Virus record (IMG/VR): IMGVR_UViG_3300023174_000040
Coordinates: 186,001 to 250,000 of that record
Length of the DNA stretch: 64,000 nt
Reading direction: 5' to 3' (one strand)
Each line of letters begins with the position of its first letter. Position 1 is the stretch's first letter. The notes beneath the pieces were generated by a model. The model made no database searches. It worked only from the letters and a program-made list of their open reading frames with translations, and was not told where the DNA came from. Of this stretch, positions 340 to 47,344 are shown one piece after another. The translations under genes and the position numbers were made by a program.

Positions 340-411
340 TGCCCGGTAGCTCAAAGATAGAGCGGCTGACTTTGGATCAGCGGGTTGCAGGTTTGAATCC
401 TGCCCGGGCAT
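340..411 (+). tRNA. trnQ: tRNA-Gln(UUG), CCA not encoded
   Basis: Cloverleaf: TGCCCGG/CCGGGCA acceptor, GCTC/GAGC D stem, GCTGA/TCAGC anticodon stem with loop CT-TTG-GA, GCAGG/CCTGC T stem with loop TTTGAAT. Followed by TCT, not CCA. Confidence 0.9.
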
Positions 412-413
412 CT

Positions 414-2276: not shown

Positions 2277-2763
2277 GGGTAACTTCTGGGTGATTCTCTA
2301 TTAACCAATTATTAAATGATTCCACTGCTCTTCCAAAGTCTGGACTTGATTTTACTCCTGATGGCAATTGCGGGAGCTGTCTTTTTGTTGGATCAAACTT
2401 ATTAGTGGGAGCTTTAGTTGCTTTTACCTTGCCCCCTATTATTTGAGCTTTTCCCCTTGAAACAACTACATCTTTTCCATTTACTTTTTGCGTACTTGTT
2501 TTCATGGGAACTTTTTTAGCCATATCCAACATTTCTGCTTTTTCGTCTTCAATATCTTGTTCTTCATCTGTGAGTTTGGAAGCTACGGGTTTTTTAATGG
2601 GAGGAGCTGCACTTGCTTTATTTGATATTCCCAAACCTATTCCTGCGAGACTTCCTGCTACCAATGCGCTCCTTAGTAGTTTATTCTTTCCTAATGAGTC
2701 TAAGATTCCTTCGTCTATTATCTCTGGGTGTTTTTCTATTAGCCATTCATTAAATGTTTTCAT
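2266..2763 (-). CDS. Putative internal virion protein (CTS-like N-terminus plus hydrophobic segment)
   Basis: Starts MKTFNEWLIEKHPE; a similar motif ESFNNWLIENHPE recurs at the C-terminus. Confidence 0.7.
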   Translation of the reverse strand: MKTFNEWLIEKHPEIIDEGILDSLGKNKLLRSALVAGSLAGIGLGISNKASAAPPIKKPVASKLTDEEQDIEDEKAEMLDMAKKVPMKTSTQKVNGKDVVVSRGKAQIIGGKVKATKAPTNKFDPTKRQLPQLPSGVKSSPDFGRAVESFNNWLIENHPEVTHER

Positions 2764-2766
2764 GTT

Positions 2767-3060
2767 TTATATTTCTATTTGATATTCTGGATCTTTGACC
2801 ATGCTGTTGTATTTATTAACAAAGAGCTTCAAGTCTTCTTCTGCGTCGTGTTCACTATTAGTGTGACTGTTAAATATTTTTCTCCACTTTGGAACTAATT
2901 GCTTTACATCTTTTTTTAGATCTTCTAATCCTTGTGGGTCGTTTTCTTTGCACCATTCAATTTGCTCCAACACATACATGGCTTCCCCGTATGCTTCATC
3001 TTCTGCCCAACCATCATTGTTATTTTCTTTAATTTCTAACCATTCATTAAATGTTTTCAT
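2767..3060 (-). CDS. Putative internal virion protein (CTS-like N-terminus)
   Basis: Starts MKTFNEWLEIKE; acidic, 97 aa. Confidence 0.7.
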   Translation of the reverse strand: MKTFNEWLEIKENNNDGWAEDEAYGEAMYVLEQIEWCKENDPQGLEDLKKDVKQLVPKWRKIFNSHTNSEHDAEEDLKLFVNKYNSMVKDPEYQIEI

Positions 3061-3088
3061 GTTTTTATATATGAATCAAATAGTTAGA

Positions 3089-3409: not shown

Positions 3410-3775
3410 ATGAAAACATTTAATGAATGGCTCTCCGGTAAGTTAGAAGAAAATCAAAGTGCTGATGGGTTTAGTTTTAAAAATCATCCCATAGCAACTC
3501 AGCAAATTGCTTCGACAGTTGTTAGTCTAGTTCCAATTGATTTTGAACATAGTCCGAGCTACGGAGAGAGAAGTTCTGATTTTGGGTTATTAATCAAGAA
3601 TCAGCATGGTGAGGCTAAAGCTTATCTGAGTCCAAACAAAAGCGTTGCCATGAATTACTACAATGAATTCATATCAGTCTTTAATCATTTAGTCACTCAA
3701 AGTAGTGAGAATGAGGTCGTTATTATGCAACCTCATACACTAGATAAATTACTTGCCCACATTGGCGTTAGATAG
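3410..3775 (+). CDS. Putative internal virion protein (CTS-like N-terminus)
   Basis: Starts MKTFNEWLSGKLEE. Confidence 0.7.
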   Translation: MKTFNEWLSGKLEENQSADGFSFKNHPIATQQIASTVVSLVPIDFEHSPSYGERSSDFGLLIKNQHGEAKAYLSPNKSVAMNYYNEFISVFNHLVTQSSENEVVIMQPHTLDKLLAHIGVR

Positions 3776-9926: not shown

Positions 9927-11213
9927 TTATTTTTTTCTTTTAATAAAAACTCTATTCTCGAGAAATTCAACAAACTTTAAAGCGTCCTCTGCTTGATATT
10001 GAGCACTAGGGTTTGAAGATGATCTAAAAACCTTTATATCATCTTTTATCTTTTCTTTAATTTTTTGTATCAAATCTTTAATGTCTTCTACTGGGTCATT
10101 AGGATCAGAAGATACCATATCAACGTAATAAAAAAACGTGTAATAAGAACCAGGAGCGTATCCTTTTTTGACTTTAAATTCTATTTTTTTAGTACTTGGA
10201 TAATAATTAATGACGAACTTTGTATTATTTTTATAATTCTTTTCTATTATTCCCGGATATTCTTTGTCATATTTAAGGCCATAAGTATTGGATATAGCTT
10301 CCATCTTGCTGTAATTATTTGATAATACAGGCTTTCTTTCATTTTTTTCTGTCTTGAGAAAACTTTTAATTTCTTGAATCACGTCGGATAAATCATTATT
10401 GTTCTCTATTACAAACTGTTTTTTGAATTCATCTTTATATCCATATATTGAAACCCAAACAGTATTAGGATGTTCTTTGGAGTTAGATAATTCTATTGTT
10501 GAATATCTATCTTTATCTCTAAGTGTTATTTCTGTTCTACCTTCACTTTGCCACCCCCTTGATTTTTTCTTAAATAATTGGTAATCAGGAAAGTTTTTAG
10601 CTATAGAATATAATATTTTATAATTACCATCATTAGTTATTAAATCTACAACTCTATACGACTTGGGGTCCAAATAAACAACTTGATTGGGTTCATTGCT
10701 ATGAATTACACCCAACCCAGGATCATATAAAACGTTATACCCAGTCTTTTTAAAGAAGCTGTTCCAGGAAGAGTTTCTGGGTAGTCCTTTTTGATTTCTT
10801 ATTCGTTCCAGAACTCCCCAAAAAAGATGACCAGGAGAATCCATGTTTGACTTATGATAAACTTCATCGCTATCTAAAAGACTTTTATCTATACCCATAT
10901 CAATCAAAAGCTTCTCAGCGGTAATCCTGTCCATGTCAAGATTTAAAACTTTAGCACTTTCGGAAGGCTCAATTAGAAACGCATAAGGGTAACTTGCAAA
11001 CATATTATTTTTAAACAAACCATGACCCAGGACATAATCTTTTGGGAAAACATAAACTCCTATTGGGTCAAAGTGGCTTGGATTTGGATTTAAACTCAAG
11101 AAGTCTGTTTTTGAAAAATGAACACCGGAGTATGGACCTTTTAACTGTTTAACTTTTTCAAATAACGCTGGTGAGGATACTTCGCTTCTTTCAAGCCACG
11201 TTTTAAAACTCAT
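9927..11213 (-). CDS. CTS-bearing protein with putative ADP-ribosyltransferase fold (ART-PolyVal-like)
   Basis: Starts MSFKTWLERSE; motif order VHFS...GVYVFP...YAFLIE...GYNVLYD...NEPNQVVYLDP is typical of ART folds. Confidence 0.45.
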   Translation of the reverse strand: MSFKTWLERSEVSSPALFEKVKQLKGPYSGVHFSKTDFLSLNPNPSHFDPIGVYVFPKDYVLGHGLFKNNMFASYPYAFLIEPSESAKVLNLDMDRITAEKLLIDMGIDKSLLDSDEVYHKSNMDSPGHLFWGVLERIRNQKGLPRNSSWNSFFKKTGYNVLYDPGLGVIHSNEPNQVVYLDPKSYRVVDLITNDGNYKILYSIAKNFPDYQLFKKKSRGWQSEGRTEITLRDKDRYSTIELSNSKEHPNTVWVSIYGYKDEFKKQFVIENNNDLSDVIQEIKSFLKTEKNERKPVLSNNYSKMEAISNTYGLKYDKEYPGIIEKNYKNNTKFVINYYPSTKKIEFKVKKGYAPGSYYTFFYYVDMVSSDPNDPVEDIKDLIQKIKEKIKDDIKVFRSSSNPSAQYQAEDALKFVEFLENRVFIKRKK

Positions 11214-19545: not shown

Positions 19546-20778
19546 ATGAAATTCAAAAATTGGCTACTAAAAGAGGAAGAACAGTACCATGCAATGAGTG
19601 CTTCCATACCAATGCCATCAGAAGTAGATATTTTAAGTGACATATTTAAAAAATTTGGAGCAAAATTATACGCAGTTGGTGGCGCAATAAGAGATTACTT
19701 GTATCACATATTTCATCAAAAGCATGTTCCGTATAATCCGAAAGATGTTGACCTGGCAACGGATCAAACACCGGATCAGGTGATCAAAATACTGAGTTCT
19801 AAAGAAGCAGTAGAGAATGGAATAAAAGTTTTTCCAAAAGGAGAAAGTTTTGGTGTAATAAGTGCCATTATAAATGGAAAAGAATTCGAAATAGCAACAT
19901 TCAGGACCGAGTTTTACGATCCAGAAAAAGGAGATGGAAGAAGACCCGATAAAGTCTCATATAGCAGCCCGGGTTTGGATGCAAAACGCAGAGATCTCAA
20001 CATTAACGCCCTCTTTTATGATTTAAAAGATAAGCAAATCCGTGATTATAACCTCGATCACAAAGGAGAGGGCGAGGGATTCAAAGATATAAAGAATCTT
20101 TCTGTTAGAAGTGTTGGTGATCCCGAGGAAAGATTCAGAGAGGATAAACTTAGAGTGTTGAGACTTGTTAGATTCTTCTCTAGATTCAACGATGACATTA
20201 TTACAAGTCATTTAGATCAAAAAACAATAAGTGCAGTTGAGAAATTCAAAGATTTAAAAGGTGTTAGTGGAGAAAGAATTGCAAATGAATTTTTGTCGGG
20301 GTTGAGTAAATGCAAGAATATTAAAAATTATATTATGAACTATAAGGCGTTAGATTTATTGTCAACAATTTTTCCCGGATTGAATGTTGATTTAAGCTCA
20401 GAGATAGATTCTCACGATCCAATTGCGGTGATGAGTCTAATTTTTAAAAATAATGATCCAAATAAATTAAGATCAAAACTAAATGAATTAAAATATTCAA
20501 ATGAAATAGCAGACACAGTTGCGTTTATTCTAAAAGTAGCTTATGATTTAAATAAATCCAATATCATAAGAATGATAAGGATGAGGGATAATTTAAGCGA
20601 CAAGCTTAAAAAATCTTTTATGGAATTTGGTAAGATAAGTGGTCTACAGAGAGAGATCAAATATTTTTTAATGTATAAGCAAGTCACAAAATCAGAAGAT
20701 TATATGCATTTAAAAGGAAAAGAAATAAGCGACAGAATGAATGATGATGAATATTCTAATTTTAGAAATAATACATAA
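19546..20778 (+). CDS. cca: Class II CCA-adding tRNA nucleotidyltransferase with CTS-like N-terminus
   Basis: Motif A GGAIRD...DVD, flexible loop RTEFY...RRPD, motif B RRDLNINA, motif D EDKLR. Probable start MKFKNWLLKEE at 19546. Confidence 0.9.
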   Translation: MKFKNWLLKEEEQYHAMSASIPMPSEVDILSDIFKKFGAKLYAVGGAIRDYLYHIFHQKHVPYNPKDVDLATDQTPDQVIKILSSKEAVENGIKVFPKGESFGVISAIINGKEFEIATFRTEFYDPEKGDGRRPDKVSYSSPGLDAKRRDLNINALFYDLKDKQIRDYNLDHKGEGEGFKDIKNLSVRSVGDPEERFREDKLRVLRLVRFFSRFNDDIITSHLDQKTISAVEKFKDLKGVSGERIANEFLSGLSKCKNIKNYIMNYKALDLLSTIFPGLNVDLSSEIDSHDPIAVMSLIFKNNDPNKLRSKLNELKYSNEIADTVAFILKVAYDLNKSNIIRMIRMRDNLSDKLKKSFMEFGKISGLQREIKYFLMYKQVTKSEDYMHLKGKEISDRMNDDEYSNFRNNT

Positions 20779-20783
20779 TTTAT

Positions 20784-20987
20784 ATGAATAATTTAATTTA
20801 CACGTTACCGATAATAGTTTTCTTTTCTTGTCTTTTTTCTTACTTGTATTTAAATCATCAGAAGAAGAAATCATTTGTAATAGCAGGAGGATGCACAATT
20901 GGGGTAATTACTATGATCATGGTAATATCTGCAATATGCTCCATAATACAATTCTTCTGGTTTGTATACCGAAATATATTTTACTAG
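20784..20987 (+). CDS. Small two-TM membrane protein
   Basis: 67 aa, two hydrophobic helices separated by HQKKKS. Confidence 0.6.
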   Translation: MNNLIYTLPIIVFFSCLFSYLYLNHQKKKSFVIAGGCTIGVITMIMVISAICSIIQFFWFVYRNIFY

Positions 20988-21016
20988 TTGACTGTTTGTC
21001 AATAAACATATAGAAT
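20988..21016 (+). promoter_or_regulatory. Sigma70-type promoter, probably giving a leaderless mRNA
   Basis: TTGACT-N17-TAGAAT; ATG 21024 lies 7 nt after the -10 box. Confidence 0.6.
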
Positions 21017-21023
21017 TATATTC

Positions 21024-21674
21024 ATGAATATTGAATATAGTTTAAAACAAATATATCCAAGAATTTTTGCGGTAATTATAAAAGATAATTACGATAGAGC
21101 AAATTTATTCTGCCGTGTCCAAGAATATTATGAATCAAAAAATGAAGAGTTCGCCGGCAAGGCATTCTCTATTTTTGATTATTATAGATGGTATAGTAAA
21201 AAGCACGGGGACAGTTTCACCTATGCTTCTGACTGGTCTGGTTTTAATTTACCTTTAAAGACCGCTGTAGACTGTCAGAAAAAAAGTGTTGTTGAGACTC
21301 CATATGATTTGATAATGAATGAAATACTAAGAAAAATATCAAGTATAAACAAAAAAGAAATAGGATATATTATAGGAATCAGATCACTTAACAGCGTCAC
21401 ATTTAGACATGAGCTTTGTCATGCATTTTATTATTCTGATGAGGCTTATAAAAATCAGATGGACGATATAACCAACACAATAAGTAAAAAAGATTTCAAT
21501 AAAATGAAAAAATGTTTAACCGACCTTGGATATAATCCCAAAGTTATTAAAGATGAAATTCAAGCATATATGGCTACAGAAATGGATGCTGAGTTATGCA
21601 AGAGCGTCAGAACAAAAAAAGAACTGCACAATAAATATAAAAAAGTTTTTAAACTATTCTTGACTAGGTATTAA
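21024..21674 (+). CDS. Putative zincin-like metallopeptidase
   Basis: HELCH (HExxH) with a downstream DEIQAY third-ligand motif. Confidence 0.55.
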   Translation: MNIEYSLKQIYPRIFAVIIKDNYDRANLFCRVQEYYESKNEEFAGKAFSIFDYYRWYSKKHGDSFTYASDWSGFNLPLKTAVDCQKKSVVETPYDLIMNEILRKISSINKKEIGYIIGIRSLNSVTFRHELCHAFYYSDEAYKNQMDDITNTISKKDFNKMKKCLTDLGYNPKVIKDEIQAYMATEMDAELCKSVRTKKELHNKYKKVFKLFLTRY

Positions 21675-22592
21675 AATATTTCCCTTACCTGGGATTTTTT
21701 CTCTTGTTTTATAGTCATATATTGGTATTTCTTCTGCTGGGTAGTTTCTGAATAAAAATTCATTTAACATACTTTTATCAGGTACGACTTTATAATATGG
21801 TTGCTGTCCGGATTGAGAGTGACTATCTGCAAACATTTTCAAAAATTGTCCCACTGTTACATCTCTGTTATTTTTTACTTTATCGAAAGTTATTTTTAGT
21901 CTACTTGCAAAAACACCTCTTATGGATAAATCTTCTACGCTAGACGAGCTTATAATAAGAGCTTCTTCATATGCTCCGCTGTCCTCGCCATAGTCTACAT
22001 CGTTATTCTTCAGAATATCAAATATTCCAATAAACGGTCTTGTGTTGCTCCTATACTCTTTTGGAAGTTCGGGGAGCACCGATGCAGGTTTTGCACTTTG
22101 AAGATTCCTAAGTAATTCTCCATTAACATCAAATCCTTCCTGTATCCCTCCTGCAGCATGGCATGTATCGATAAGAACGACCAATCTCTTTACTTTTTTT
22201 ACAGATGCTATTGCCTTTAAAGCTTTGCTAAATTTAAAACTTCCTCCAGCAGCTGTCATTGCAAAATTTTGATTACTACCTCCTCCGTGGCTATTCAAAT
22301 AAAGCAATAGAGTTCCATTATTGCTTAACTTACCTGTTAGTTCTGATATTCTTTTATATATCTCGGCGGAACTAACGTTATGGTATTTCTCTGCCTTGAA
22401 TCCTAATTTACCATCAGAGAAAACTCCGTCTATTAATTCGAGGTTTTTCAGCCTGCCATTTTCATTGGTCATTGTAAATAACCCTGCGAGATTGCTTTCG
22501 CCATAATCAAAAGATAATCCTGTTTCTTTGACTTCAGCAAATAGACTAGAAGAGGCTAATAAGAATATAATTAAATAAATTAAGGTTTTCAT
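21654..22592 (-). CDS. Secreted caspase-like (clan CD; C14/C13-like) cysteine protease
   Basis: Signal peptide MKTLIYLIIFLLASSSLFA; catalytic-dyad motifs LYLNSHGGG and LIDTCHAAG. Confidence 0.7.
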   Translation of the reverse strand: MKTLIYLIIFLLASSSLFAEVKETGLSFDYGESNLAGLFTMTNENGRLKNLELIDGVFSDGKLGFKAEKYHNVSSAEIYKRISELTGKLSNNGTLLLYLNSHGGGSNQNFAMTAAGGSFKFSKALKAIASVKKVKRLVVLIDTCHAAGGIQEGFDVNGELLRNLQSAKPASVLPELPKEYRSNTRPFIGIFDILKNNDVDYGEDSGAYEEALIISSSSVEDLSIRGVFASRLKITFDKVKNNRDVTVGQFLKMFADSHSQSGQQPYYKVVPDKSMLNEFLFRNYPAEEIPIYDYKTREKIPGKGNILIPSQE

Positions 22593-22605
22593 ATAATAGT
22601 ATAGT

Positions 22606-22637
22606 AAAAAAAACAGGAAAGCATTTCTGCTTTCCTG
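22606..22637 (-). terminator. Rho-independent terminator (minus strand)
   Basis: 10-bp stem CAGGAAAGCA/TGCTTTCCTG with a 4-nt loop, followed by 8 T on the minus strand. Confidence 0.65.
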
Positions 22638-22704
22638 CCAAGGTCAACACCTTTGTTCCCATACCCGGAACACCAAACAATGTTGTATGTTAATATATAG
22701 TAGT

Positions 22705-23157
22705 ATGGATGAAAGAGATTTTCTCAATAGTAAAAATATAAAGGAATATAGAGACTTCGCATTTCGTGAAGATATGATGAAGTTTGCTGTTGGGGTTATA
22801 CTTGGAAATTCTTTCAATAAAGTTATAAATGGAATATCTGACTATCTATTAATGCCTATTTTTAAGTTTTTAGTTTCAAAGACAGGAGATGGATGGAGAA
22901 ACTGGGCATTCATTCCGTTTAACGGACTTGAGTTTGAAGTGGGAAGAATGATAGGTGTGCTTGTAGATTTTCTTTTAATTTCTTTTATTTTGTATTTAAT
23001 TTGTCAAAAGGGATTGGGTAGATTAAAAAGAAAAGAAGAGCCCGCAAAAGGTAAAAAATGTGAGTATTGTTGCAAAGAAATAGACACTGAAGCGAAAAAA
23101 TGTCCTTATTGCACCTCTGACGTCACATTACAAACATCAATCCCTCAAGACCATTGA
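22705..23157 (+). CDS. mscL: Large-conductance mechanosensitive channel MscL with C-terminal Zn ribbon
   Basis: IKEYRDFAFREDMMKFAVGVILG..F.K......LLMP (N-helix and TM1), TM2 VDFLLISFILYLI, C-terminal CEYC...CPYC. The ORF track starts at 22687. Confidence 0.85.
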   Translation: MDERDFLNSKNIKEYRDFAFREDMMKFAVGVILGNSFNKVINGISDYLLMPIFKFLVSKTGDGWRNWAFIPFNGLEFEVGRMIGVLVDFLLISFILYLICQKGLGRLKRKEEPAKGKKCEYCCKEIDTEAKKCPYCTSDVTLQTSIPQDH

Positions 23158-23944
23158 AGATAGTATCAAGATTATATTCGTATTTAACGGCATTATTGTG
23201 TAGCATTTCATTATATTCTCTGTATGCTGTTTCATCTACCATATTCTTTGTTCTATAGTTGGGTCTGCCCCAGGCCATCTTTCTGTCTATTATGAGGCTT
23301 TTAGGAAGGTCATTGAATGTTATTTTACCTGATATAATATACTGGGCCAATAGTTCATATACGAACTCATCGCTATTCCTCAGGATATTATTTCTTGCAC
23401 TTTTCATGGTGCCTACAGCTAAGAAGATTGCTTTTCTCTGCTTCTCATAGTCTGGCCGAAGGCTGCTATATCTGCCTGTGCTTATTCCATATACATATTG
23501 TAATATTTCATCGAAGTCTCTTCTGACTTCTTCATTAAAATGTCTTTCAAAAGTTTTATCACGTCTAATCGCATGGCCTAATCTATGGGCCATGGCCCAA
23601 GCTGTCATAGGTATTTTTTCTGCCCCAGTATTATTTGTGAATATAACGGTTATAGAATCTTCTTTTGGCTTTATATCAACTTCTAAATTCTCTTTAACCC
23701 ATTCCGGGGTCACCTGACCGACTTCGACATGTTTACTTGCCTTAAAACTCCTTAAAAAGTAAAATTCAAAATTACTCTTGCTGTTGCTCCAGTGCTTATG
23801 TATTTTTTCAACCGCCTTGGGATTTTCTAGTATTCCCGAGTCTTGTGTGTTATATCCGTATTTTCTCTTAGCTTCAGGTCCCCATTGACCCATTAGTTCA
23901 AAATTGGTTACAGGTGACTCGTTGATAAAATCTTTGAAGTTCAT
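23123..23944 (-). CDS. CTS-bearing hypothetical protein, possible degenerate zincin
   Basis: Starts MNFKDFINES; AHRLGH plus downstream DEFVYE. Confidence 0.65.
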   Translation of the reverse strand: MNFKDFINESPVTNFELMGQWGPEAKRKYGYNTQDSGILENPKAVEKIHKHWSNSKSNFEFYFLRSFKASKHVEVGQVTPEWVKENLEVDIKPKEDSITVIFTNNTGAEKIPMTAWAMAHRLGHAIRRDKTFERHFNEEVRRDFDEILQYVYGISTGRYSSLRPDYEKQRKAIFLAVGTMKSARNNILRNSDEFVYELLAQYIISGKITFNDLPKSLIIDRKMAWGRPNYRTKNMVDETAYREYNEMLHNNAVKYEYNLDTIFNGLEGLMFVM

Positions 23945-24291
23945 TTAGAATTTTTTTCTTGTATTAATAGTTCTCCTAAAACTTCCATTTTACCAAGTAG
24001 TTCCTGGAATGTTTTTTGGTTTACATCTTCTATGTTATCCATCATTGAATGAAGTTTTTCACAAAGCTTTTTATATTCTTCTTTGCTTTTTTCAAAGTCC
24101 ATCTTTCCTTCTAAGGCTTTTTTGTAGTAGGGAAGTTTGACGGCAAAGTGATAATGAGTAAGAAGGGCGGGACCACCTTTTTCTTCAGCCATCTCAGATA
24201 TCTTTTTTGCACCATCAAATCTTTTTTCTGAGAAATTATTAAATTTTTCAACTTGTTCAGTTAAACCGGCGAGTTTTAATATATCGTTCAT
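23941..24291 (-). CDS. Hypothetical protein
   Basis: 116-aa helical ORF; ATGA overlap with the downstream gene. Confidence 0.7.
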   Translation of the reverse strand: MNDILKLAGLTEQVEKFNNFSEKRFDGAKKISEMAEEKGGPALLTHYHFAVKLPYYKKALEGKMDFEKSKEEYKKLCEKLHSMMDNIEDVNQKTFQELLGKMEVLGELLIQEKNSK

Positions 24292-24312
24292 TTTTATCCT
24301 TTTTAATATATA

Positions 24313-24340
24313 TTGATTTGAACTAAAAATAATCTATAAT
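24313..24340 (+). promoter_or_regulatory. Sigma70-like promoter, probably leaderless
   Basis: TTGATT-N16-TATAAT, then 6 nt to ATG 24347. Confidence 0.45.
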
Positions 24341-24346
24341 TAAAGA

Positions 24347-24982
24347 ATGGATAAAATATTACAAAATGAAGATAAATTCGTAATCTACGATAACGTCCTC
24401 ACTCCAGAAGAGTTTAAAGGTATGTGGGATTGGTTTCAAACTCTAGATTATTCTTCTATAAACTCAAATGGATTCATGAAAGTTTGGAAATTGACTGACG
24501 GAAATCCCATGGGGAGTAAGGAATATAATGCTAAAGATTACCCATTCAAAAACCCACTTGATAAGGTTTATGAAAAAATAAACGAAATTAATAATAACCA
24601 TCCAGAAATTTTTGGCAAATGGAGTGAAGTCTTTTTAAGAGCATATATCTATGGAAGAGGAACTAAAATAAATTGGCACAACGACACTGGCTATACAGCA
24701 GCAGTTATATTTTATACTCATCCCTATTGGGGAGCAGGATGGGGTGGCGAGTTAATGTTGGCCGAGACCCCAAACATAGAGTATAAAAAGGAAAATGTAG
24801 GCGGACCTTTAGAGACTTGGTGGACAGATAAAATAATGAACTATGTTGCATGTGGGTATTATGTTCAACCAAAGCCAAACAGAATTGTGGCAACAAGAGG
24901 CGGGGTTTGGCATCAAATAAACAGAGTAGACGAAGATTCCGGGTCCAATTCACGGTGCTCTATAGTTGCTTTTTTCAAATAA
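24347..24982 (+). CDS. 2OG-Fe(II) oxygenase (prolyl-hydroxylase-like)
   Basis: WHND (HxD), WGGEL, PKPNR, distal WH and RCS. Confidence 0.85.
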   Translation: MDKILQNEDKFVIYDNVLTPEEFKGMWDWFQTLDYSSINSNGFMKVWKLTDGNPMGSKEYNAKDYPFKNPLDKVYEKINEINNNHPEIFGKWSEVFLRAYIYGRGTKINWHNDTGYTAAVIFYTHPYWGAGWGGELMLAETPNIEYKKENVGGPLETWWTDKIMNYVACGYYVQPKPNRIVATRGGVWHQINRVDEDSGSNSRCSIVAFFK

Positions 24983-24985
24983 TTA

Positions 24986-27967
24986 TTAACAGCAAATCTT
25001 AGTTAGTGTCATGCTGCCGATCCAGTTGGACGAGCAAGCACCTACCAAAGTCCAGCCACTTCCATTCCAATAACAGTGATTATTGTCCCCGCAACTCGTG
25101 TAATTTGATTTATTTCCTGATCCGGGTGCTTTTTGAGATACGGATAATATTTTATAATTCCTAGGTGATTCTATGCTGGCTATGTAGTCTAGGTTTCTCT
25201 GATCCCACGCCAGTGTACTTGGTGCACCATATCTTGATCTTAGATTAATAGGATCAGTAAAAATAACATTCGGCGTATATGTGGGCGTTGCCGTCAATGT
25301 GATTGTAGGTGTAGGAGTTAAAGTTTTTGTTGGAGTTGGTGTCGGGAAGGGTATATCATAACGACCTCGCAACATCTCGAAATTTTGAAGAACCTCGACT
25401 GCAGATAATCCCCTGTTGTATTGTTTAAATACCCCTACTCTTTGTTGTGACCAATCTGGAACTGGTTGGCTGTTGGCTGCAATTCTAAGAGGATAATTGC
25501 TACTAAAGTCATAATTATTTATCAACGGGCTATTATCGGTAAACATTTTTACTGAATTTTTATATAATCTAAACACGCCCTTAGTTCTGGTGTATACGAG
25601 ATGAACCCAAGTATTAAAATCAGTACTGTCCGTCAAGAGAGAAATCGGATTGCCGCCGGCATCTTGGTATTGCCACTCGGTGGTATTACTATTTATATTG
25701 TTTAAAACACCATTGAATCCGGCCCCCGCCGAGTATTTTCCTTTACCAAAGATTTTACCATAAGTAAAACCTCCATTCTTTGGATAAACCCATATTTCAT
25801 AAGCAAAGTCACCGCTCAAATTATTGATCGAAGCATTGTTGGCAACCTCCGCCCATTGAGTGGTGCTATTGGAATTAAATATCAAAATTCCACCATGATT
25901 AGCACTATAAATTGGCTGACTTATGAGTGTTGCGTGATTACCAAGACCGCTAAGATCTCTCCACACATAGCCAGTTCCAGGGTAACTCGATATATCCCCG
26001 GCATCTAGATGTAGAACTAACCCACTAACAGAAGACAAATATGTGCCTGTTACTGTTTGGGTTAATGTTGGGGTTTTAGTTGAAGTAGGAGTTTGAGTAT
26101 TGGTGGGAGTTCTGGTGTTGGTTCTAGTTAATGTTGGAGTGTTAGTTAATGTTTTGGTGTTAGTTAATGTTGGAGTATTAGTTGATGTTCTAGTGTTGGT
26201 TAAAGTTGGAGTGCTAGTTAATGTTAAAGTTGGAGTGTTAGTTAATGTTGTGGTACTAGTTTGTGTAGGGGTGCTAGTATTGGTCGGTGTTTGAGAACTA
26301 GTTAAAGTTGGAGTTCCCGTTAAAGTAGGGGTATTAGTTAGTGTGGGAGTTAGAGTCGGAGTGAGTGTTGGAGTGCTTGTTAAGGTTGCCGTCTGAGTTA
26401 AAATTAATGTTTGAGTACTGGTCAGGGTTTGAGTGCCAGTTATTGTCGGAGTATTTGTTAAAGTGGGAGTACTAGTTAAAGTGGGAGTTTCTGTTAGTGT
26501 AGGAGTATTTGTTAAAGTCGGAGTACTGGTTTTAATTGGTGTTTGAGTATTGGTGTTTGTTAAACTTATTGTGGGAGTTAGTGTAGGAGTCTCTGTTAAT
26601 GTGGGAGTATTTGTTAGTGTAGGAGTCTCTGTCAACGTGGGAGTATTTGTTAGTGTAGGAGTCTCTGTCAACGTGGGAGTATTTGTTAGTGTAGGAGTCT
26701 CTGTCAACGTGGGAGTATTTGTTAGTGTAGGAGTCTCTGTTAACGTTGGAGTAGATGTCAACGTAGGAGTCTCTGTTGACGTGGGAGTATTTGTTAGTGT
26801 AGGAGTGTTAGTAGGAGTGGATGTTTGAGTATTAGTTGAAGTAAGTGTCTGAGTACTTGTTAGCGTAGGTGTAATTGTAAGTGTCGCAGTTGGGGTTCTA
26901 GTATTTGTTCTTGTGAGAGTTGGCGTTAAGGTTAATGTGGGAGTAAGCGTGGGGGTAAGCGTGGGGGTAGGAGTGGGAACAACAGAGGGAGATAATATCT
27001 TATATGGACTAATATTATTAAAAATAATAGAAGAAGACCCACTGGATAAGGATCCCAATGTCCAAGATTCTTCTGCGTATATTGTTGGAAAATCAAATAA
27101 TCTTATATTTAAATAAGAACCCCCAGATCCATGAGTGGGAGATTCTCCTGCATCGGTGCTAGTGGTGGCCCATCCGACAACTTTATTAGAAGAGTCAATT
27201 AACACAACTTCAAATGATGCATAATCAACTTCTGTGAATTCAGGAAAGTCTTCTTTTGCTTTATTGATTGAATTAGAATAATTGAATTCAAATGATGTGC
27301 CAGAAAATTTTCTATCAATTAGATTATAGTCGCCAATATTTGATCCATAAAAATAAGAAGATGATAAATTAGAAGTATAGTCGTTTGTGCTTGGATTTTT
27401 TAATCTAAAATATCCACCAACGTAATATGCGGACACGGGATATGAAACTTGAGGGAGAGGCAAATCTAAATCATAAGGGGAAAAATTATTTACTCTACTA
27501 AATACAAGATATGTTTTTCCGCAAACAAACTGAGAAAAGCCAGGAAATCCAGTTGGAGTCCAAGATAGTAAATTATTTCCACTGGGCGCCTCTGTTATGA
27601 TCTTGGTAATTCTGGTCTTTACTTCGGGTGAAAGGTCAGAAATATTAAAATTAGATTCCGCTTTGTAGGTAATAAATTGAAATTTTTTATTTATAGCTCC
27701 ACTTTGATCAGGAGAATTTGAATTAATATTCAAAATATAATCAGAAAAATTACTTGCATTTTTTATTATGTATGATTTTTCAGGACCCAACGTACTAAAT
27801 CCAGGAAGTCCTGTTGGGGTCCAAGATAAAAGATTATTGCCACTAGCGGATTCTCCATATACTATATCGACTTGAGATAAACCGGATAGATTATAACTTT
27901 CTCTTGAACTTATTATTTGATATAATTTATTAATTATCATTTTAGTTCTAACCTCAAAGTGAAGCAC
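24986..27967 (-). CDS. Virion fibre-like protein with long Thr/Pro stalk and LamG domain
   Basis: Duplicated N-terminal [16 protein letters not shown]; about 300 aa of TPTLT repeats; GLVLHLDAG...WRDLSG.GNHA...WVHLVYT LamG; Cys-containing C-terminus. Probable start 27940. Confidence 0.8.
26050..26975 (-). repeat. Coding tandem repeat, 18/36-bp units ([12 protein letters not shown])
   Basis: Near-identical contiguous 36-bp units GTGTAGGAGTCTCTGTCAACGTGGGAGTATTTGTTA at about 26581-26796 within a longer degenerate array. Confidence 0.9.
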
Positions 27968-27973
27968 ATAAAA

Positions 27974-29362
27974 TTAAAAATTCACTTCGCCATTTGTAAA
28001 AAATCCAGAATAAGTGCTTCCTGATTTTGTGATTCTAAATGGTAAAGATAAGTAGTTTGGAGATAAAGACACTGAGGCTATTAAAATTCCTCCTGCTTTA
28101 ATATCCATGTTATATGGAATTCCCGAGCTACTCAAAGCATTAAACTCAAATATAGTTTCGCTTTCTGATGTTACTGTGACCCCAGTAGATTCTACGAACC
28201 AGTAACTAGGTGATAGGGGATTTGCCCCCAACACAGTAGTAATAGATGTATTCAAGAAAACAGTTGTTGTCGTAGTGGTTGTGGTAGTGGTTGGTGCCAT
28301 GGTTGTTGTTGGTCCTGCTGTGGTCGTGGTTGTAGTTGTTGGCTCTAATGTGGTTGTGGTTGGGCCAATTGTGGTCGTAGTAACTGTCGGGATATACATG
28401 AAGTGAACATCTATCTCAGCTATCCAATTAACATCACTCCCCAAAACCTTTAATCTAATCTTATCATCTTCAACTCTAATGTTAACATCCCAATCGTCAT
28501 TATCGGTATTTAATGATTTATTTTCTTCCCCCACAAGATATATGTATTGAGTTGAGCTTAATGGGGTATCGGGGTTTATCGATTTCCTATATGTCGCTTC
28601 TATATCAGATGATATTGCGGCATTTCTGTCGAAGTTAGTGCCGCTACATGATATTCTAAACTTGGCCAAAAGATTATCAGGGACATCAAATTCAAAAAAA
28701 GTTTTTTCGCTATTTCCAATTGTTGTTGCCGTGCCTGAGTATGTTATGCTTTTAGATAGATTGTTTCTTTTTTCTAAAATTATTGAATTCTGATTTTCTG
28801 AGAACGGATCACTATTATTCTCTATAGATACATAACCCTTAACATGAAGAGATTTTTCCGATTTACTCCAAACAACATCGTCTGTTACACTTACCGGATT
28901 AGCTCCATCACCGATTAAGAAGCTGCCTAAGTTAAGAGATGATCTGCCTGTTCCTCCCCAAGAAACATCAACTGGGGTGGCTTCCCACGTGCCAGAGAGA
29001 ATGGTTCCGACTTGCGTTAGTTTAGAATAACTAACGGTATCTCCCAGGGAGTATTGATCCAACACTAAGTCCCCATCAATTTTATATGACTTATAAAGAC
29101 TTAAATTAAAGCTTTCACTACTTGTCCAAGAATGTTTGGTATAGTCGAATAATATGGTTTTAGGGGTTGCCGCATTTACCTTGATTCCACTTTGATCCGC
29201 ACCAAGGTCACTTGTATTCAAAGAGCCTATTACCAATTGATTATCGGCAGATAAGAAAATACTAGTTACAAAATCTCTCATATCCTGGGCGGATATATCG
29301 CCAGAAGAATTATTGTAAAATAAGGATAATATATCTGTTCTTGTTCTTAGTGTGTCTGTCAT
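27974..29362 (-). CDS. Tail-fibre-like structural protein with Thr-rich linker
   Basis: LTQVGTILSGTWEATPVDVSWGGTG fibre-type motif; poly-Thr/Pro at about 28261-28387. Confidence 0.65.
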   Translation of the reverse strand: MTDTLRTRTDILSLFYNNSSGDISAQDMRDFVTSIFLSADNQLVIGSLNTSDLGADQSGIKVNAATPKTILFDYTKHSWTSSESFNLSLYKSYKIDGDLVLDQYSLGDTVSYSKLTQVGTILSGTWEATPVDVSWGGTGRSSLNLGSFLIGDGANPVSVTDDVVWSKSEKSLHVKGYVSIENNSDPFSENQNSIILEKRNNLSKSITYSGTATTIGNSEKTFFEFDVPDNLLAKFRISCSGTNFDRNAAISSDIEATYRKSINPDTPLSSTQYIYLVGEENKSLNTDNDDWDVNIRVEDDKIRLKVLGSDVNWIAEIDVHFMYIPTVTTTTIGPTTTTLEPTTTTTTTAGPTTTMAPTTTTTTTTTTVFLNTSITTVLGANPLSPSYWFVESTGVTVTSESETIFEFNALSSSGIPYNMDIKAGGILIASVSLSPNYLSLPFRITKSGSTYSGFFTNGEVNF

Positions 29363-29405
29363 TAAGGATATATATTGTTTTCATCTAAAATTACTATGTT
29401 ATTAA

Positions 29406-30503
29406 GTGAAAATACTTTTTTTAGCCTATACTAGCAAATATTATAATGGGAGTGGGATTAAAATAGAGAATCCTGGACTGACACGAAAAATGTCTTGTTT
29501 AGAGACATGGGTCCCAAAAATAGAGTCTTTGGGCCACAAAGTGATATTTTTTGATGGAGGCAACAAAGAAGTATCTTATGATAAAGACAACAAGATACTA
29601 CACTTAATAGCCAATGAATCTTACGACTATCCCAATACTGGGCTGGGGTCGTTTATGATTGAAAGATTGAAAGAGGCTGTACTATGGTCATTAAAAAATG
29701 AAGAGTTTGATTACATATTCAGGACAGATGATGGATCTTATTTAAATCACTACGTGATGGATGATTTAATGAAGGAGATGGAAGGATTCGATGTATTGAG
29801 GGCAAAATTTGGTGGCGGCGGCGGAATTTTAATGTCCAAAGAAGTTTGTCGAGAATTTATAAAATTTGAAAATACCTCAAATATAACATTAGAAGATATT
29901 GCTTTTTTTAATTTTTTAGCAATTAAAAAGTTTAAAACAAAAGTCACCAATTTATTATCTTGTTTTTACATACTTGGTGAAAAACTATTCTCTATTCATT
30001 ACACAAATGGCAAAAGACAATATTTTGTAAATAATATATTAGATTATTACTATGGCGGAAATCCAGTAGATAGAAAAGTTGTGGTGAACAGTCCCGCAAA
30101 TTTTGGAAAACTATTCCCCGTCAAGACTTGGAATTGGGATTGGGGAGGAACACCATTTTGGTATTCTTATGAAAAAGATATTTATAATTGGGAATATTAT
30201 ACGGGTCAAACAAGATGCCAATATGAACACAGGCAATGCTGCCCATTTGGGGAGGGGGCATTGTCCAGATTGATGTTTTATAATTTTGATTATAATCTAG
30301 AACATCAACCTGAAGAGGCTGTATTCAGAGAACACATATCTTCTTTAAAAGAAAATGGTTTGGCATATATTCCCGATTCCGATTTGTACAGAGACAGAAT
30401 ATTTGAAATCTATCCCGGCTCAGAGATCACAGACAATATTAAAGAAAATATAGAATTATTGGAAATCAATAAGAACAAATGGATATTAATCCGAAAAAAT
30501 TAA
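29406..30503 (+). CDS. Glycosyltransferase (GT31/galactosyltransferase-like)
   Basis: DYIFRTDDGSYLN (DDD-type motif), GGGGILMS, EDIAF; GTG start. Confidence 0.6.
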   Translation: MKILFLAYTSKYYNGSGIKIENPGLTRKMSCLETWVPKIESLGHKVIFFDGGNKEVSYDKDNKILHLIANESYDYPNTGLGSFMIERLKEAVLWSLKNEEFDYIFRTDDGSYLNHYVMDDLMKEMEGFDVLRAKFGGGGGILMSKEVCREFIKFENTSNITLEDIAFFNFLAIKKFKTKVTNLLSCFYILGEKLFSIHYTNGKRQYFVNNILDYYYGGNPVDRKVVVNSPANFGKLFPVKTWNWDWGGTPFWYSYEKDIYNWEYYTGQTRCQYEHRQCCPFGEGALSRLMFYNFDYNLEHQPEEAVFREHISSLKENGLAYIPDSDLYRDRIFEIYPGSEITDNIKENIELLEINKNKWILIRKN

Positions 30504-31033
30504 AAAGCATAGAGAGGATATTTGTCTGGTGAAACATCTGTCTCTATGAAGTCAATAATAGTCCTTAGCTGGTCGTATATGTCTCTCTTAGAGTTCAGGA
30601 TGATTGACTTGCGTTCTTCGTCCATGAAAAATCCTTCGGGATCAACTAGCACGACAGGGATCTTATCATTCAATTTGAGAGCAAATGGTGCGGACTTACC
30701 GACAGCAACAATTATATCGGGCTTGAATTTGGCGAAATCAATGTCCAGTTTACTTGTATTCTTAGATTCAAAAACGGTGCAATCTATATTTTGAAACTTC
30801 TTCAATAAAGGATGCTTCATCAAGTAAGAAAGATAGCCAGTGTCATTCATGAAAAAGATTCGAGTACCATCCCAAACAGGATCTTCATCCACTATTCTCT
30901 TGTAATACTTTTCACTGCCATTATCATAGTTTTCATATAATGGGTAATATTTTCGCTTCTTTTTCTTTGTCTTAGAAGAATTGTCTTCAATTTTATATTT
31001 GTTGATATCAAAATCAAACGATTCCAAATTCAT
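30500..31033 (-). CDS. Hypothetical protein
   Basis: 177-aa ORF; PDIIVAVG...PVVLVDP suggests a Rossmann-like alpha/beta fold. Confidence 0.6.
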   Translation of the reverse strand: MNLESFDFDINKYKIEDNSSKTKKKKRKYYPLYENYDNGSEKYYKRIVDEDPVWDGTRIFFMNDTGYLSYLMKHPLLKKFQNIDCTVFESKNTSKLDIDFAKFKPDIIVAVGKSAPFALKLNDKIPVVLVDPEGFFMDEERKSIILNSKRDIYDQLRTIIDFIETDVSPDKYPLYAF

Positions 31034-31120
31034 TGCGGCACCTTAGTATAGTGTGTGGAGAAATACTACTCCTCACAGGATGGATATTCAAGATACCGTA
31101 CCAAAAAGAAACTTAAAGAA

Positions 31121-31573
31121 TTAGTTTTCCCAAGGAAAAACTATCCATCTATTTTCTTTTTCTCGATCTATTTTTCTTGCAGTGTAGTCTACTGTAAAAG
31201 ATTGTCTTATATTGTAGAACAGGCATGCTGAATATATGTTTGAAAAACCTTCTGAAGTCAGACGTGATCTTATTCTTTGTAGAGTATCCCCGCTATCACA
31301 AATTTCGTCTACCAATAGTAGATTAGAAGATTTAGACACATCTTCTAATTCTATAGTTATATTATCTTTATAAATTGTTGCTACTCTAAGAGGAACAGAG
31401 AGTATGTGGCTGAATTTAATAGAAGGAACTAATCCTCCTCGTTTAATACCAATTATAAAATCAGGCATTACACCCGACCCAGATACACGACCAGATAAGA
31501 TTCTCATATCTGAATCAAAATCTTGCCAAGAGTATATTATTTCTTGTAGCATAATGATATTATTATAATGCAA
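31121..31573 (-). CDS. Type I phosphoribosyltransferase (Gpt/HPRT-like)
   Basis: IIGIKRGG, LLVDEICDSGDT (PRPP loop), WIVFPWE. Probable start 31552. Confidence 0.85.
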   Translation of the reverse strand: MHYNNIIMLQEIIYSWQDFDSDMRILSGRVSGSGVMPDFIIGIKRGGLVPSIKFSHILSVPLRVATIYKDNITIELEDVSKSSNLLLVDEICDSGDTLQRIRSRLTSEGFSNIYSACLFYNIRQSFTVDYTARKIDREKENRWIVFPWEN

Positions 31574-31579
31574 AAATAA

Positions 31580-32398
31580 TTAAAAATCAACTAAAGAAAT
31601 CTCATCATCAGATATTTCTCTGCCGAATTTATTAATAAATGCTTTTTTGATAACTTCTATCGGCTTGCCTTTTAAGTATAAGATAAATTCTTTTGGATCA
31701 TCTATGGAAGTTTTCTTTCTGCTATTAATAATTTTATTTTTTTCTAATAATTTATACGCAGAATTTTTAAAACCTTGTATGGCGTCTAGCGCCCCATTTT
31801 CACCGCCCTTATTCCCAGATATTCTTCCAGTCCAATCCATTGTTATTATATAAAGAAGAAGTTTAACTTTTCTTTCATTTTTATAATTTCCATCTTGATC
31901 GAAAACAACAGAAGACACCTTCTTGGAAAAAGATCCATTTCCAAGACTCATGTGATAATCAATACAGAAGTATATATCTTGTATTTCATCAGGGGATAGT
32001 ACCGATAACATAGGACTCCACATTGAACCAAGCTTATCTATCATTGGCTCGTAATGGTGGGATTGATCGTGCTGGTGTGCTGATATCTTACCGGATGTGT
32101 CGGCGGCATCTTTCCAATGAATGCCGTCTACAGTTGTCGCACTTGCTTTTCCAATATCGTGAAGCCAAGCACAAATCTTAAGAATTTTCTCTTCTTTATC
32201 AGACAGATCAAAGTTTATTTTTGAAAAGGGAAAAATTCCTTGCTCTTTCTTAAGTAGTCTTTTGGCAACTTCAAGAGAATTTCTGACCATTCTTGTGTGT
32301 TTGAAAACATCGCCCTCTGCGTGGTGTTCGGGATTTTGAGGGACATCCTTAAGTAAATCCCTAAGACTAGATTCGACAAGCCAAAGTTTAAAATTCAT
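31580..32398 (-). CDS. Stand-alone HD-domain phosphohydrolase of the CCA-enzyme-associated type, with CTS-like N-terminus
   Basis: QNPEHHAEGDVFKHT...AWLHDIGK...YHM...DWTGR; starts MNFKLWLVES. Confidence 0.8.
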   Translation of the reverse strand: MNFKLWLVESSLRDLLKDVPQNPEHHAEGDVFKHTRMVRNSLEVAKRLLKKEQGIFPFSKINFDLSDKEEKILKICAWLHDIGKASATTVDGIHWKDAADTSGKISAHQHDQSHHYEPMIDKLGSMWSPMLSVLSPDEIQDIYFCIDYHMSLGNGSFSKKVSSVVFDQDGNYKNERKVKLLLYIITMDWTGRISGNKGGENGALDAIQGFKNSAYKLLEKNKIINSRKKTSIDDPKEFILYLKGKPIEVIKKAFINKFGREISDDEISLVDF

Positions 32399-32418
32399 GA
32401 TATACTATATATTATTAG

Positions 32419-32786: not shown

Positions 32787-33230
32787 ATGTTAAATTTTAA
32801 AGATTGGCTTATAAGTGAAGGTTCTAATCCTGGCGGCAAAACTGGTTTGTATCCATTGGGATACGGTGGAATAGGATTATACCCGCCCCAGTGGTACCTC
32901 ACAAGAAGTGCGGATGCAATCTTTTACCTGTCCGTAGACGAAAGAATCTACAATTCAACAGATAAGACATCGTTTGATATAACTCATATACCCGGGGAGT
33001 CAAATACAAAATTAAATAGCGGCGAGTCTGGTTTGTGGAGTATAAGGGGCATAGGTGGTGAATCCACTTCACCAAAAATCAATAAAGATGGATTCTCGGC
33101 AAAATATGGAGAAGGAAAGCCTTGGAGCATAAAGAAGATACCCGGAAAACCTTCTTACACAAAAAACAAAGATTTTGTCCCAGATTCAGGAGACGGCGGC
33201 ATATGGAGCATAAAACATATTAAAAAGTAG
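32787..33230 (+). CDS. CTS-bearing hypothetical protein with internal repeats
   Basis: Starts MLNFKDWLISE; four (W/F)(S/D)IxxIxG repeats. Confidence 0.7.
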   Translation: MLNFKDWLISEGSNPGGKTGLYPLGYGGIGLYPPQWYLTRSADAIFYLSVDERIYNSTDKTSFDITHIPGESNTKLNSGESGLWSIRGIGGESTSPKINKDGFSAKYGEGKPWSIKKIPGKPSYTKNKDFVPDSGDGGIWSIKHIKK

Positions 33231-46138: not shown

Positions 46139-47344
46139 ATGGGAAAATTTCAAGATTACGTTTTATACAAAGAGAACAACTACAAAGAGAACAATATTCC
46201 GGTAGTTTCAAAAGTTAAATTGGCTAGGAATCCAGGAGTAGAAGATTTCCAACCATTCGTAATCGATAAAGACAACCACCCCAGTTTAAGATTGCTTATA
46301 AAAGCTTTCGAAAATAGCCCACAAATAGGTGTTGGTTACACCACCATGGATAAAACAGATGGTGAGGTTGAACCAAAACTTAAAAAGAAAGTCGTCTACT
46401 TAACAGGTGGGGCAGTTCGTGATCATCTAAAAGGAAAGACCCCGAGAAACTATGATCTTGCAACAGATGCCACATCAAGCGAAATTAAATTAATTTTAAA
46501 GGGAAATGGTTTTGAGGAAACTCAGACTCCGAGAAGTAACAAGAGTTTCTTTGCCAGTAGGATGGATGATAAAAATAAGCCCGTAGAATTCACAGTTGTT
46601 ATTAACGGAGAAAACTTTGAATTATCTCCTTTGTCAAAATCCATTAAGAATAGGAATTTAAATGTTGATGGATTTTCAGCAACATCAAGCTTAGAAGACG
46701 ATGCAGCATCAAGAGACTTTACAATAAATGCAATGTATATTCCACTTAAAAATAGTGAAGGAGAAAACACAGAACTACTTGATGTTTATGGTGGTGCTCA
46801 TCATCTTAAAAATGGTCAAATAATCTCTATCGGGAAGTTCTCAAAAAGAGTTGAAGATGACCCAATGACAGCACATAGATATATAAGAATGCAAGCCAGA
46901 TACGGAAATGAAGACATCCCTGAAGATCACATCGAATCTATGGGAAAAATAAACGATCTAAATAAAAACTATAAAAGGGAATACATTCTTGGTCTCGAGA
47001 ATCCCGAAATAAATGACAGAAAATATTTGGATATGTACAAAAACACAGGTCTTTTAAATACAGTTTATCCTTTAGATAATTTAGCTGTGGACGACGTGCC
47101 AGAAAAAGCTTACAATGATAGATTTTTAACTTCTGCTTGGTTGATGAAAGATAAAGCAATAGAACAAGTTAAATTTGCTTTACTATCAGCGGGGTGGGAA
47201 TCAAGAGAAGTAGAAGATATCGCACATCTTATCAGCATGTATCAAGCAGAAAGAAATAATTACCAGCAGGTTTCAACTCCTTGCGGACTTTCTGATAACA
47301 AAGTTAATAAGTGGAAAAAGATATATTCAACATCAGCCTGGTGA
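46139..47344 (+). CDS. Divergent class II tRNA-nucleotidyltransferase paralog with altered catalytic motifs and CTS-like N-terminus
   Basis: GGAVRD present, but DxD reads NYD, RRD reads SRD(FTINA) and EDxxR reads DDPMT; starts MGKFQDYVLYKE. Confidence 0.8.
   Translation: MGKFQDYVLYKENNYKENNIPVVSKVKLARNPGVEDFQPFVIDKDNHPSLRLLIKAFENSPQIGVGYTTMDKTDGEVEPKLKKKVVYLTGGAVRDHLKGKTPRNYDLATDATSSEIKLILKGNGFEETQTPRSNKSFFASRMDDKNKPVEFTVVINGENFELSPLSKSIKNRNLNVDGFSATSSLEDDAASRDFTINAMYIPLKNSEGENTELLDVYGGAHHLKNGQIISIGKFSKRVEDDPMTAHRYIRMQARYGNEDIPEDHIESMGKINDLNKNYKREYILGLENPEINDRKYLDMYKNTGLLNTVYPLDNLAVDDVPEKAYNDRFLTSAWLMKDKAIEQVKFALLSAGWESREVEDIAHLISMYQAERNNYQQVSTPCGLSDNKVNKWKKIYSTSAW

Follow-up and report, generated by a model that had tools for sequence, protein, structure and literature searches.

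The stretch of DNA considered here, hereafter the window, comprises 64,000 nucleotides (bases 186001-250000) of the IMG/VR virus record IMGVR_UViG_3300023174_000040, which is 323,267 bp long, has a GC content of 35.8% and is about 64% complete by CheckV estimate. Two genes in the window, 11 kb apart and on opposite strands, are the main subject: one encodes a class II CCA-adding tRNA nucleotidyltransferase of 410 amino acids (aa) without an HD domain (19546..20778, + strand), and the other a predicted stand-alone HD phosphoesterase of 272 aa (31580..32398, - strand). Both proteins start with a short peptide that resembles the capsid-targeting sequence (CTS) of bacteriophage T4. Elsewhere in the record, two head genes of T4 type lie about 1 kb from each other: one for a prohead protease like gp21 (PF03420, E 2.4e-28; genome 289323-289841 region) and one for a major capsid protein like gp23 (PF07068, E 2.9e-90). 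Both are present in relatives too, and they mark the element as a T4-like jumbo myophage. A search of the GenBank phage records found no cultured relative. When 50,697 of these were searched by blastn and tblastn, neither the window region nor the HD protein had a relative, and the only matches of the CCA enzyme were to three huge phages, all uncultured, at 31-33% identity.

The identity of the CCA enzyme is clear from Pfam (PolyA_pol, PF01743; E 2.6e-22, 79.9 bits against a cut-off of 23) and from PHROGs, where it falls into phrog_2244, tRNA nucleotidyltransferase (E 6.6e-38). Its best solved relatives in the PDB are human mitochondrial TRNT1 (E 1.3e-23) and bacterial CCA enzymes, although sequence is an unreliable means of separating CCA addition from CC-only, A-only or poly(A) addition. 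PolyA_pol_RNAbd is matched below threshold (18 bits, cut-off 22), and the Pfam scan detects no HD domain. In an alignment with E. coli Cca and six homologues, the GGAIRD motif, the DVD carboxylates, RRD, EDKLR and the motif E helix SGERIANEF are all intact. The protein is also full length, having about 130 extra residues past the RNA-binding region, in the place that the HD domain occupies in E. coli Cca. A possible substrate is encoded in the window as well: a tRNA-Gln (UUG) gene found with ARAGORN (340..412, + strand) has no encoded 3' CCA, the next bases being TTTAAT, and encoded CCA is absent from all seven tRNAs and the tmRNA of the 323-kb genome. (The tmRNA, with tag peptide GTVNYAMAA, is located at genome C1:113382-113842 and adjoins a tRNA-Leu; six further tRNAs are found in the genome. 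An odd tRNA-like gene with a two-base anticodon call, at genome 118976-119043, likewise has no encoded CCA.)

The HD protein contains the sequence PQNPEHHAEGDVFKHT together with WLHDIGK and MDWTGR. It is a member of a small family, with 37 homologues in a set of 5.8 billion proteins. Across a 20-member alignment, H26, E28, G29, H34, H80, D81, H110, H149, D188 and R192 are invariant, and the metal-binding pattern H34, H80-D81, H110, H149 and D188 is thus kept in 20/20 sequences. All 20 members match Pfam HD weakly (best E 1.5e-4). An AlphaFold (AF2) model built on this alignment has a predicted local distance difference test score (pLDDT) of 90.2, and a wide search with VIA-align finds its closest structural neighbour in residues 245-448 of 3wfo_A (Z 12.2; next 9.1). 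Of the 50 best neighbours (Z 6.4-12.2), almost every one has the HD fold or is a related protein of phosphodiesterase type. The structure 3wfo, which E. coli Cca matches as well, is labelled "tRNA processing enzyme" in the PDB, and we take it to be the CC-adding enzyme from Aquifex (Yamashita et al. 2014). The initial annotation of this DNA had described a CCA enzyme with intact motifs and no HD domain, a separate gene for a CCA-type HD module and a tRNA-Gln lacking its CCA, all of which is correct.

What kind of HD protein is this? The 57 nearest relatives outside the family (E 7e-15 to 1.5e-9) contain an HD domain in 52 cases, a Pnk-like AAA_33 kinase in 15 and PolyA_pol in 7. A profile made from these relatives matches the HD part of 3wfo in the PDB at E 2e-21, the next HD structure being at 1.5e-4. 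Many remoter HD matches in IMG/VR follow immediately on a nucleotidyltransferase match, the classical order of CCA then HD. Judged by these relatives and by the model, the family is part of the RNA end-healing HD clade of HD-bearing tRNA nucleotidyltransferases and HD-Pnk, for which the label "CCA-type HD" is fair. Some results weigh against this assignment: the window protein itself reaches only 13.8 bits with Pfam HD (PF01966), below the cut-off of 22; of the structural searches, VIA-align alone singles out 3wfo, while Foldseek returns generic HD-fold matches, with TM <0.5 in PDB and Swiss-Prot and with E down to 2.5e-5 in afdb_clusters; and the match of the HD profile to E. coli Cca by hhalign (Cca residues 211-357) has the motif columns in register and E 0.0033 but is statistically weak, with a probability of 9.7% on a single-sequence template.

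Direct sequence searches of the PDB with the HD protein and its family profile yield chance matches or short matches to Cas3-HD (E 0.015-0.56), the latter being the sole direct matches of the profile. Pfam Cas3_HD is weakly matched by 5/20 family members, and one source labels a homologue Cas3-HD. The protein could accordingly be imagined as a Cas3-HD-like nuclease that, once injected, attacks the nucleic acids of the host or of rivals. However, these matches are confined to the HDIGK segment and cover only about 20-35 residues around the metal-binding motif, and the family is fused to RNA repair enzymes and to no helicases. We regard such a nuclease as very improbable. By its relationships, the phage HD protein would instead be expected to act on RNA with 2',3'-cyclic phosphate or 3'-phosphate ends.

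It is the fusions that connect the two window genes. Run against 1.84 billion representatives, the HD family profile matches 70 proteins at E <1e-30, among them at least 11 clusters of 648-761 aa that have the HD family at the N-terminus. Seven of these 11 clusters were scanned with Pfam, and all seven consist of HD (residues 1-265) followed by PolyA_pol at about 310-480; a motif scan places HDxGK upstream of GGxVRD in 10/11. Four HD-CCA open reading frames (ORFs) of 728-738 aa, at loci L103, L112, L133 and L151, were re-read from the raw IMG/VR DNA and have no stop codons. Their CCA halves share 41-45% identity with the window enzyme, which places them in its CCA clade. The HD family is also joined to kinases: P0038 and P0042 have a P-loop AAA_33 kinase ahead of HD, and P0047 (894 aa) has a kinase, then HD, then a tail of 455 residues. 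This tail has no match in Pfam, the PDB or its own genome, and it groups with T4 Rnl1-like ligases in a protein-language-model (Atlas) search (score 0.93, 215/256 features), which is a lead only. Together, the HD-CCA, kinase-HD and kinase-HD-ligase-like fusions give a likely function to an HD family that the databases leave unnamed.

The occurrence of HD-CCA fusions in relatives indicates that the two window enzymes are functionally linked, as the initial annotation had proposed, and the sequence evidence for this link is solid. Its description of a "split" kit is imprecise: the order in the fusions is HD then CCA, the opposite of E. coli Cca, and the CCA enzyme is not a broken, truncated E. 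coli-type Cca, being full length and belonging to a clade far more numerous than the HD family (3349 proteins compared to about 112 representatives, both at E up to 1e-10). The suggested survey of co-occurrence says little, because the related IMG/VR records are 11-79% fragments: HD is found in only 1/14 of those with a tagged CCA enzyme, most of these being fragments of 11-68%, and CCA in 1/5 of those with HD.

The kit, which had been described as two enzymes for tRNA 3'-end repair, is also larger than this. Both enzymes are present, and outside the window the genome encodes in addition an AAA_33 kinase of 163 aa (genome 145754-146245, E 1.2e-17) and an Rnl1-type RNA ligase of 351 aa (PF09511, E 1.2e-15); RtcB and Rnl2-type ligases were searched for in the record and none was found. 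The kinase shares 37% identity with the corresponding part of P0047; its N-terminus reads MKKFTVWLENK, and it thus carries the same kind of tag as the CCA and HD proteins. Because phmmer finds no match to it in the PDB, its identity as a polynucleotide kinase is based on Pfam AAA_33 and on the fusions. The combination of a tagged kinase and an untagged ligase points to general repair of tRNA breaks, not of the acceptor end only. It is highly probable that the HD protein, CCA enzyme and kinase have a role in RNA end repair.

This set can be compared to several known systems. E. coli Cca and the HD-bearing class II enzymes (3WFO) likewise combine a nucleotidyltransferase with an HD domain bearing the signature P..P..H.E.....HT / HD[IL]GK / D..GR. 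In the case of E. coli Cca, the HD domain is credited with activity as a 2',3'-cyclic phosphodiesterase, a 2'-nucleotidase and a phosphatase (Yakunin et al. 2004, pmid 15210699, as cited in PMC2190708). In the cellular enzymes these activities are fused, CCA then HD, and untagged, whereas the phage has separate genes and both proteins are tagged. Runella HD-Pnk, in which the 2',3'-phosphoesterase activity of the HD domain is known (PMC6097658), joins such a domain to a P-loop 5'-OH polynucleotide kinase next to a ligase, and the phage genome has a matching kinase and ligase; this likeness is one of description, not of direct sequence comparison. On the other hand, the phage kinase and HD protein are separate, the kinase precedes HD in the fused relatives but follows it in Runella, and the Runella protein is a cellular one, unlike the tagged phage proteins. 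T4 itself counters the anticodon nuclease PrrC with Pnkp and Rnl1, and here too a T4-like phage combines a kinase with a predicted 3' phosphoesterase and an Rnl1-type ligase. In T4, however, the phosphatase is of the HAD type and fused to the kinase, the pathway has no CCA enzyme, and the proteins are made after infection; in the present phage, an HD protein takes the place of the phosphatase and a CCA enzyme is added. HD-type phosphatases are reported to be rare in jumbo phages, and RNA repair genes of jumbo phages, including CCA enzymes, have already been catalogued (PMC7824862).

Could the two enzymes have more ordinary duties? The CCA enzyme might only mature the phage's own tRNAs and tmRNA, all of which lack an encoded CCA, a role that would need no packaging, and the HD protein might be an unrelated hydrolase of dNTPs, (p)ppGpp or cyclic-nucleotide immune signals. 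The generic structural neighbours of the HD model do include phosphodiesterases, SAMHD1, GppA/PPX and HD-GYP enzymes, and the HD family is absent from most records that have the CCA family. However, the HD family has been fused repeatedly and independently to CCA enzymes and to Pnk-like kinases, and both its nearest relatives and its top structural neighbour are HD modules of tRNA nucleotidyltransferases. Moreover, bacterial hosts normally encode a CCA enzyme of their own. Simple housekeeping is thus an unlikely explanation, and repair of RNA ends is the preferred one.

The N-terminal tag shared by these proteins has the form M-x-(x)-F-[KN]-x-W-L-x-x-E and is almost exclusively N-terminal, as found first with a regular-expression scan and then with a position matrix. 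In the six-frame ORFs of the genome, the matrix finds 21 sites, 18 of them right after Met, compared to 3.25 sites (0.3 after Met) in shuffled ORFs; the matrix was built from 15 N-termini and is circular for those seeds, besides which it found three new N-terminal sites. At least 18 ORFs of the 323-kb genome are tagged, a disproportionate share of them in the window, and their products are unrelated: besides the CCA enzyme, the HD protein and the kinase, they include a dozen ORFans of 71-651 aa in which Pfam detects no domain. The prohead protease gp21 of T4 cuts at (L/I)-x-E. In the CCA enzyme, the tag reads MKFKNWLLKEEE (19546..19581, + strand; matrix score 23.4), and L-K-E at residues 8-10 is a possible cleavage site of the gp21 type; in the HD protein, it reads MNFKLWLVE (32372..32398, - strand; matrix score 19.1), with L-V-E at residues 7-9. 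The W-L-E of the kinase tag fits this pattern less well.

The tag is conserved at the level of the peptide. It is kept as MxFKxW[LF] in 20/20 aligned relatives of the HD protein, down to 33% identity, and as F[KR]x[FW][LIM]..E ahead of the catalytic core in 101/120 of the closest homologues of the CCA enzyme, where several of the exceptions resemble start-codon miscalls. In the alignment, E. coli Cca has no such N-terminal extension. Related records contain 1-6 strict copies each, compared to none for a reversed control pattern. The codons vary between copies while the residues are kept. A signal acting only at the nucleotide level was considered and rejected, since distant orthologues and internal junctions keep the peptide in spite of this variation. 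The junctions in question are those between HD and CCA in the fusion proteins, where a second tag-like motif is found in 7/11 cases by regular expression and in two more by eye. In two of the raw ORFs, the junction tag is complete with a former initiator Met (KMNFRQF[IM]ESQE), as expected from the fusion of two tagged genes. The arrangement suggests that the prohead protease could separate the HD and CCA halves at this point. In the kinase-HD fusions, the HD core begins at SLRD, immediately past the position of the tag.

The closest known counterpart of the tag is in T4, where the internal proteins IPII and IPIII start MKTYQEFIAE and IPI starts MKTFKEF (AF158101). As in the phage described here, about 10 N-terminal residues, M-K-T-[YF]-x-E-[FW]-[IL]-x-E, stand on otherwise unrelated proteins, in a genome with genes for a gp21-type protease and gp23. 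In T4, this peptide is the CTS, by means of which diverse internal proteins that act against host defences, and even foreign proteins, are loaded into the prohead; the injected internal proteins of T-even phages have only the CTS in common (PMC3012670). The tagged phage proteins are mostly ORFans, resembling in this respect the hypervariable T-even internal proteins. They differ in that the cargo would include RNA repair enzymes of 19-47 kDa among at least 18 tagged proteins. The CTS-like tag that had been noted on both enzymes is thus a genuine recurrent N-terminal peptide resembling that of T4, in a genome with T4-type protease and capsid genes.

Does the peptide address these enzymes to the capsid? 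It could instead serve in partner binding, timed proteolysis, localization in the cell or translation start, with the enzymes acting after infection as do T4 Pnkp and Rnl1. Several observations are in keeping with such a role and count against packaging. The presence of the tagged proteins in the virion is a prediction from sequence, in a lineage that has no cultured relative; the likeness to the T4 CTS covers only about 10 residues; the Rnl1-type ligase, which is needed in anticodon-loop repair, has no tag; and in the AF2 model the tag is part of one helix that runs on into the HD core. In addition, the promoter-like sequence ATATATA, the most enriched 7-mer in the 45 nt ahead of ORF starts (29 seen, 3 expected), is found at 5-15 nt upstream of the ATG in many tagged genes (e.g., window 32399-32420, ahead of the HD gene, and 3061-3080), and these genes have no Shine-Dalgarno sequence, while others, such as the protease gene, have AAAGGAG instead. 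Since ATATATA is common to many tagged genes, what they share may partly reflect co-regulation. On the other hand, the peptide closely matches the N-termini of IPII, IPIII and IPI, and the genome has the T4-type protease and capsid genes; it is found on unrelated proteins, its amino acids conserved while the codons vary; and it occurs at the domain junctions of fusion proteins, where translation initiation is not obviously relevant. A function of the tag unconnected with the capsid is therefore the less likely explanation, though a good deal more plausible than housekeeping, and by sequence and by analogy with T4 the tagged enzymes are probably, if by a modest margin, packaged in the virion. 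(ATATATA may mark a class of promoters with very short leaders; a late promoter is not supported, and the capsid and protease genes do not have the element.)

How would a packaged repair set work? During head assembly, the tag would bring three enzymes of the set, all except the ligase, to the scaffolding core of the prohead, where the gp21-type protease would cut it off after the Glu of the (L/I)-x-E site. At infection, the processed enzymes would leave the head together with the DNA, and healing of tRNA could start before any phage protein is made. Where a ribotoxin has cleaved a tRNA, the HD enzyme would open the 2',3'-cyclic phosphate or remove the 3'-phosphate left behind. If the acceptor end was hit, the CCA enzyme would then rebuild the 3'-OH end; if the anticodon loop was hit, the kinase would phosphorylate the 5' end and the ligase, made after infection or supplied by the host, would join the halves. 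The gene identities, motifs and fusions, the recurrence and conservation of the tag and the T4-type head genes are observed, whereas the activities on tRNA ends, the packaging, cleavage and injection are inferred. Taken as a whole, a tRNA repair set that is packaged by means of the tag and injected is a proposition about evenly balanced between right and wrong. More tentatively still, a large and uncultured lineage of T4-like jumbo phages may load its heads, by means of a conserved peptide, with about 20 proteins including a tRNA repair set, which in some members would be a tagged polyprotein cut at its internal tag.

Why would a phage carry repair enzymes in its head? Defences that cut tRNA, such as PrrC, RloC, PARIS, retron effectors, OLD and bacterial Schlafens, are described as common in recent accounts. 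The known phage answers, namely spare tRNAs and Pnkp with a ligase, all require prior expression of phage genes, and a phage in a host with disabled tRNAs cannot translate its own repair genes. Enzymes carried in the capsid would solve this bootstrapping problem by restoring translation before the phage makes anything, which, if true, would constitute a new timing class of counter-defence and the first example of RNA repair enzymes that are injected. Both tRNA repair by phages and internal proteins directed by a CTS are familiar already; in the literature searched, no paper was found that connects targeting to the capsid with enzymes of RNA repair, a negative that does not prove absence. The delivery hypothesis is attractive, and it would provide a simple rule for recognizing the cargo of the head in T4-like giant phages that are uncultured: M-x-F-K-x-W-L-x-x-E at the N-terminus, together with a gene for a gp21-type protease.

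The other tagged proteins of the window, which the motif scan, the matrix or both picked out, have no known domain in Pfam or, where consulted, PHROGs. An ORFan of 165 aa (2266..2763, - strand) starts MKTFNEWLIE, the closest in the window to the MKTYQEFIAE of IPII and IPIII, and has a near-copy of its own tag, SFNNWLIENHPEV, 16 residues from the C-terminus (matrix score 22.1). Next to it is an ORFan of 97 aa with the tag MKTFNEWLEIKE (2767..3060, - strand), followed by one of 121 aa with MKTFNEWLSGKL (3410..3775, + strand). The remaining tagged proteins have 428 aa (MSFKTWLERSE; 9927..11213, - strand), 273 aa (MNFKDFINES; 23123..23944, - strand), 147 aa (MLNFKDWLISE; 32787..33230, + strand) and 222 aa (MKKFIDWIEANE; 49972..50640, - strand). 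A weaker tag-like start, MSLFKNYVESQE, with ATATATA upstream, is found on a SNF2-family helicase of 971 aa (39763-42678, + strand).

The window encodes a second protein of the PolyA_pol family (401 aa; 46139..47344, + strand; Pfam E 8.2e-20), which has a weak tag-like start, MGKFQDYVLYKE, and a 45-residue insert ahead of the core. Its catalytic motifs are degenerate, with NYD for DxD, SRD for RRD and EDDPM for EDxxR, and it may be a pseudo-enzyme or have another activity. In a sister clade of phage CCA enzymes (IMG/VR loci L104-L154, 35-39% identity), the N-terminus bears a different conserved extension, for example MKENIKQILREGL..EERIKF. These genomes also have T4-type protease and capsid genes, so the extension may be that lineage's version of the tag. 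The same loci include further fusions, a kinase with CCA in L128 and a multi-domain ORF of 1657 aa in L153.

Several other genes lie between the CCA and HD genes or close to them. A caspase-like peptidase with a signal-peptide-like N-terminus (Peptidase_C14, E 1.7e-6) is encoded at 21654-22592 (- strand). A protein of 993 aa (24986-27967, - strand) has long Thr/Pro repeats of the TPTLT type, which coincide with a strong local GC skew, and adjoins a protein of 462 aa (27974-29362, - strand) that matches a virion-structural PHROG (E 7.3e-13); both are likely to be fibre or decoration proteins. The HD gene is followed directly, on its own strand, by a small phosphoribosyltransferase gene (31121-31573, - strand; E 8.9e-13), and an HNH endonuclease gene (32419-32781, + strand) separates the HD gene from the next tagged gene.

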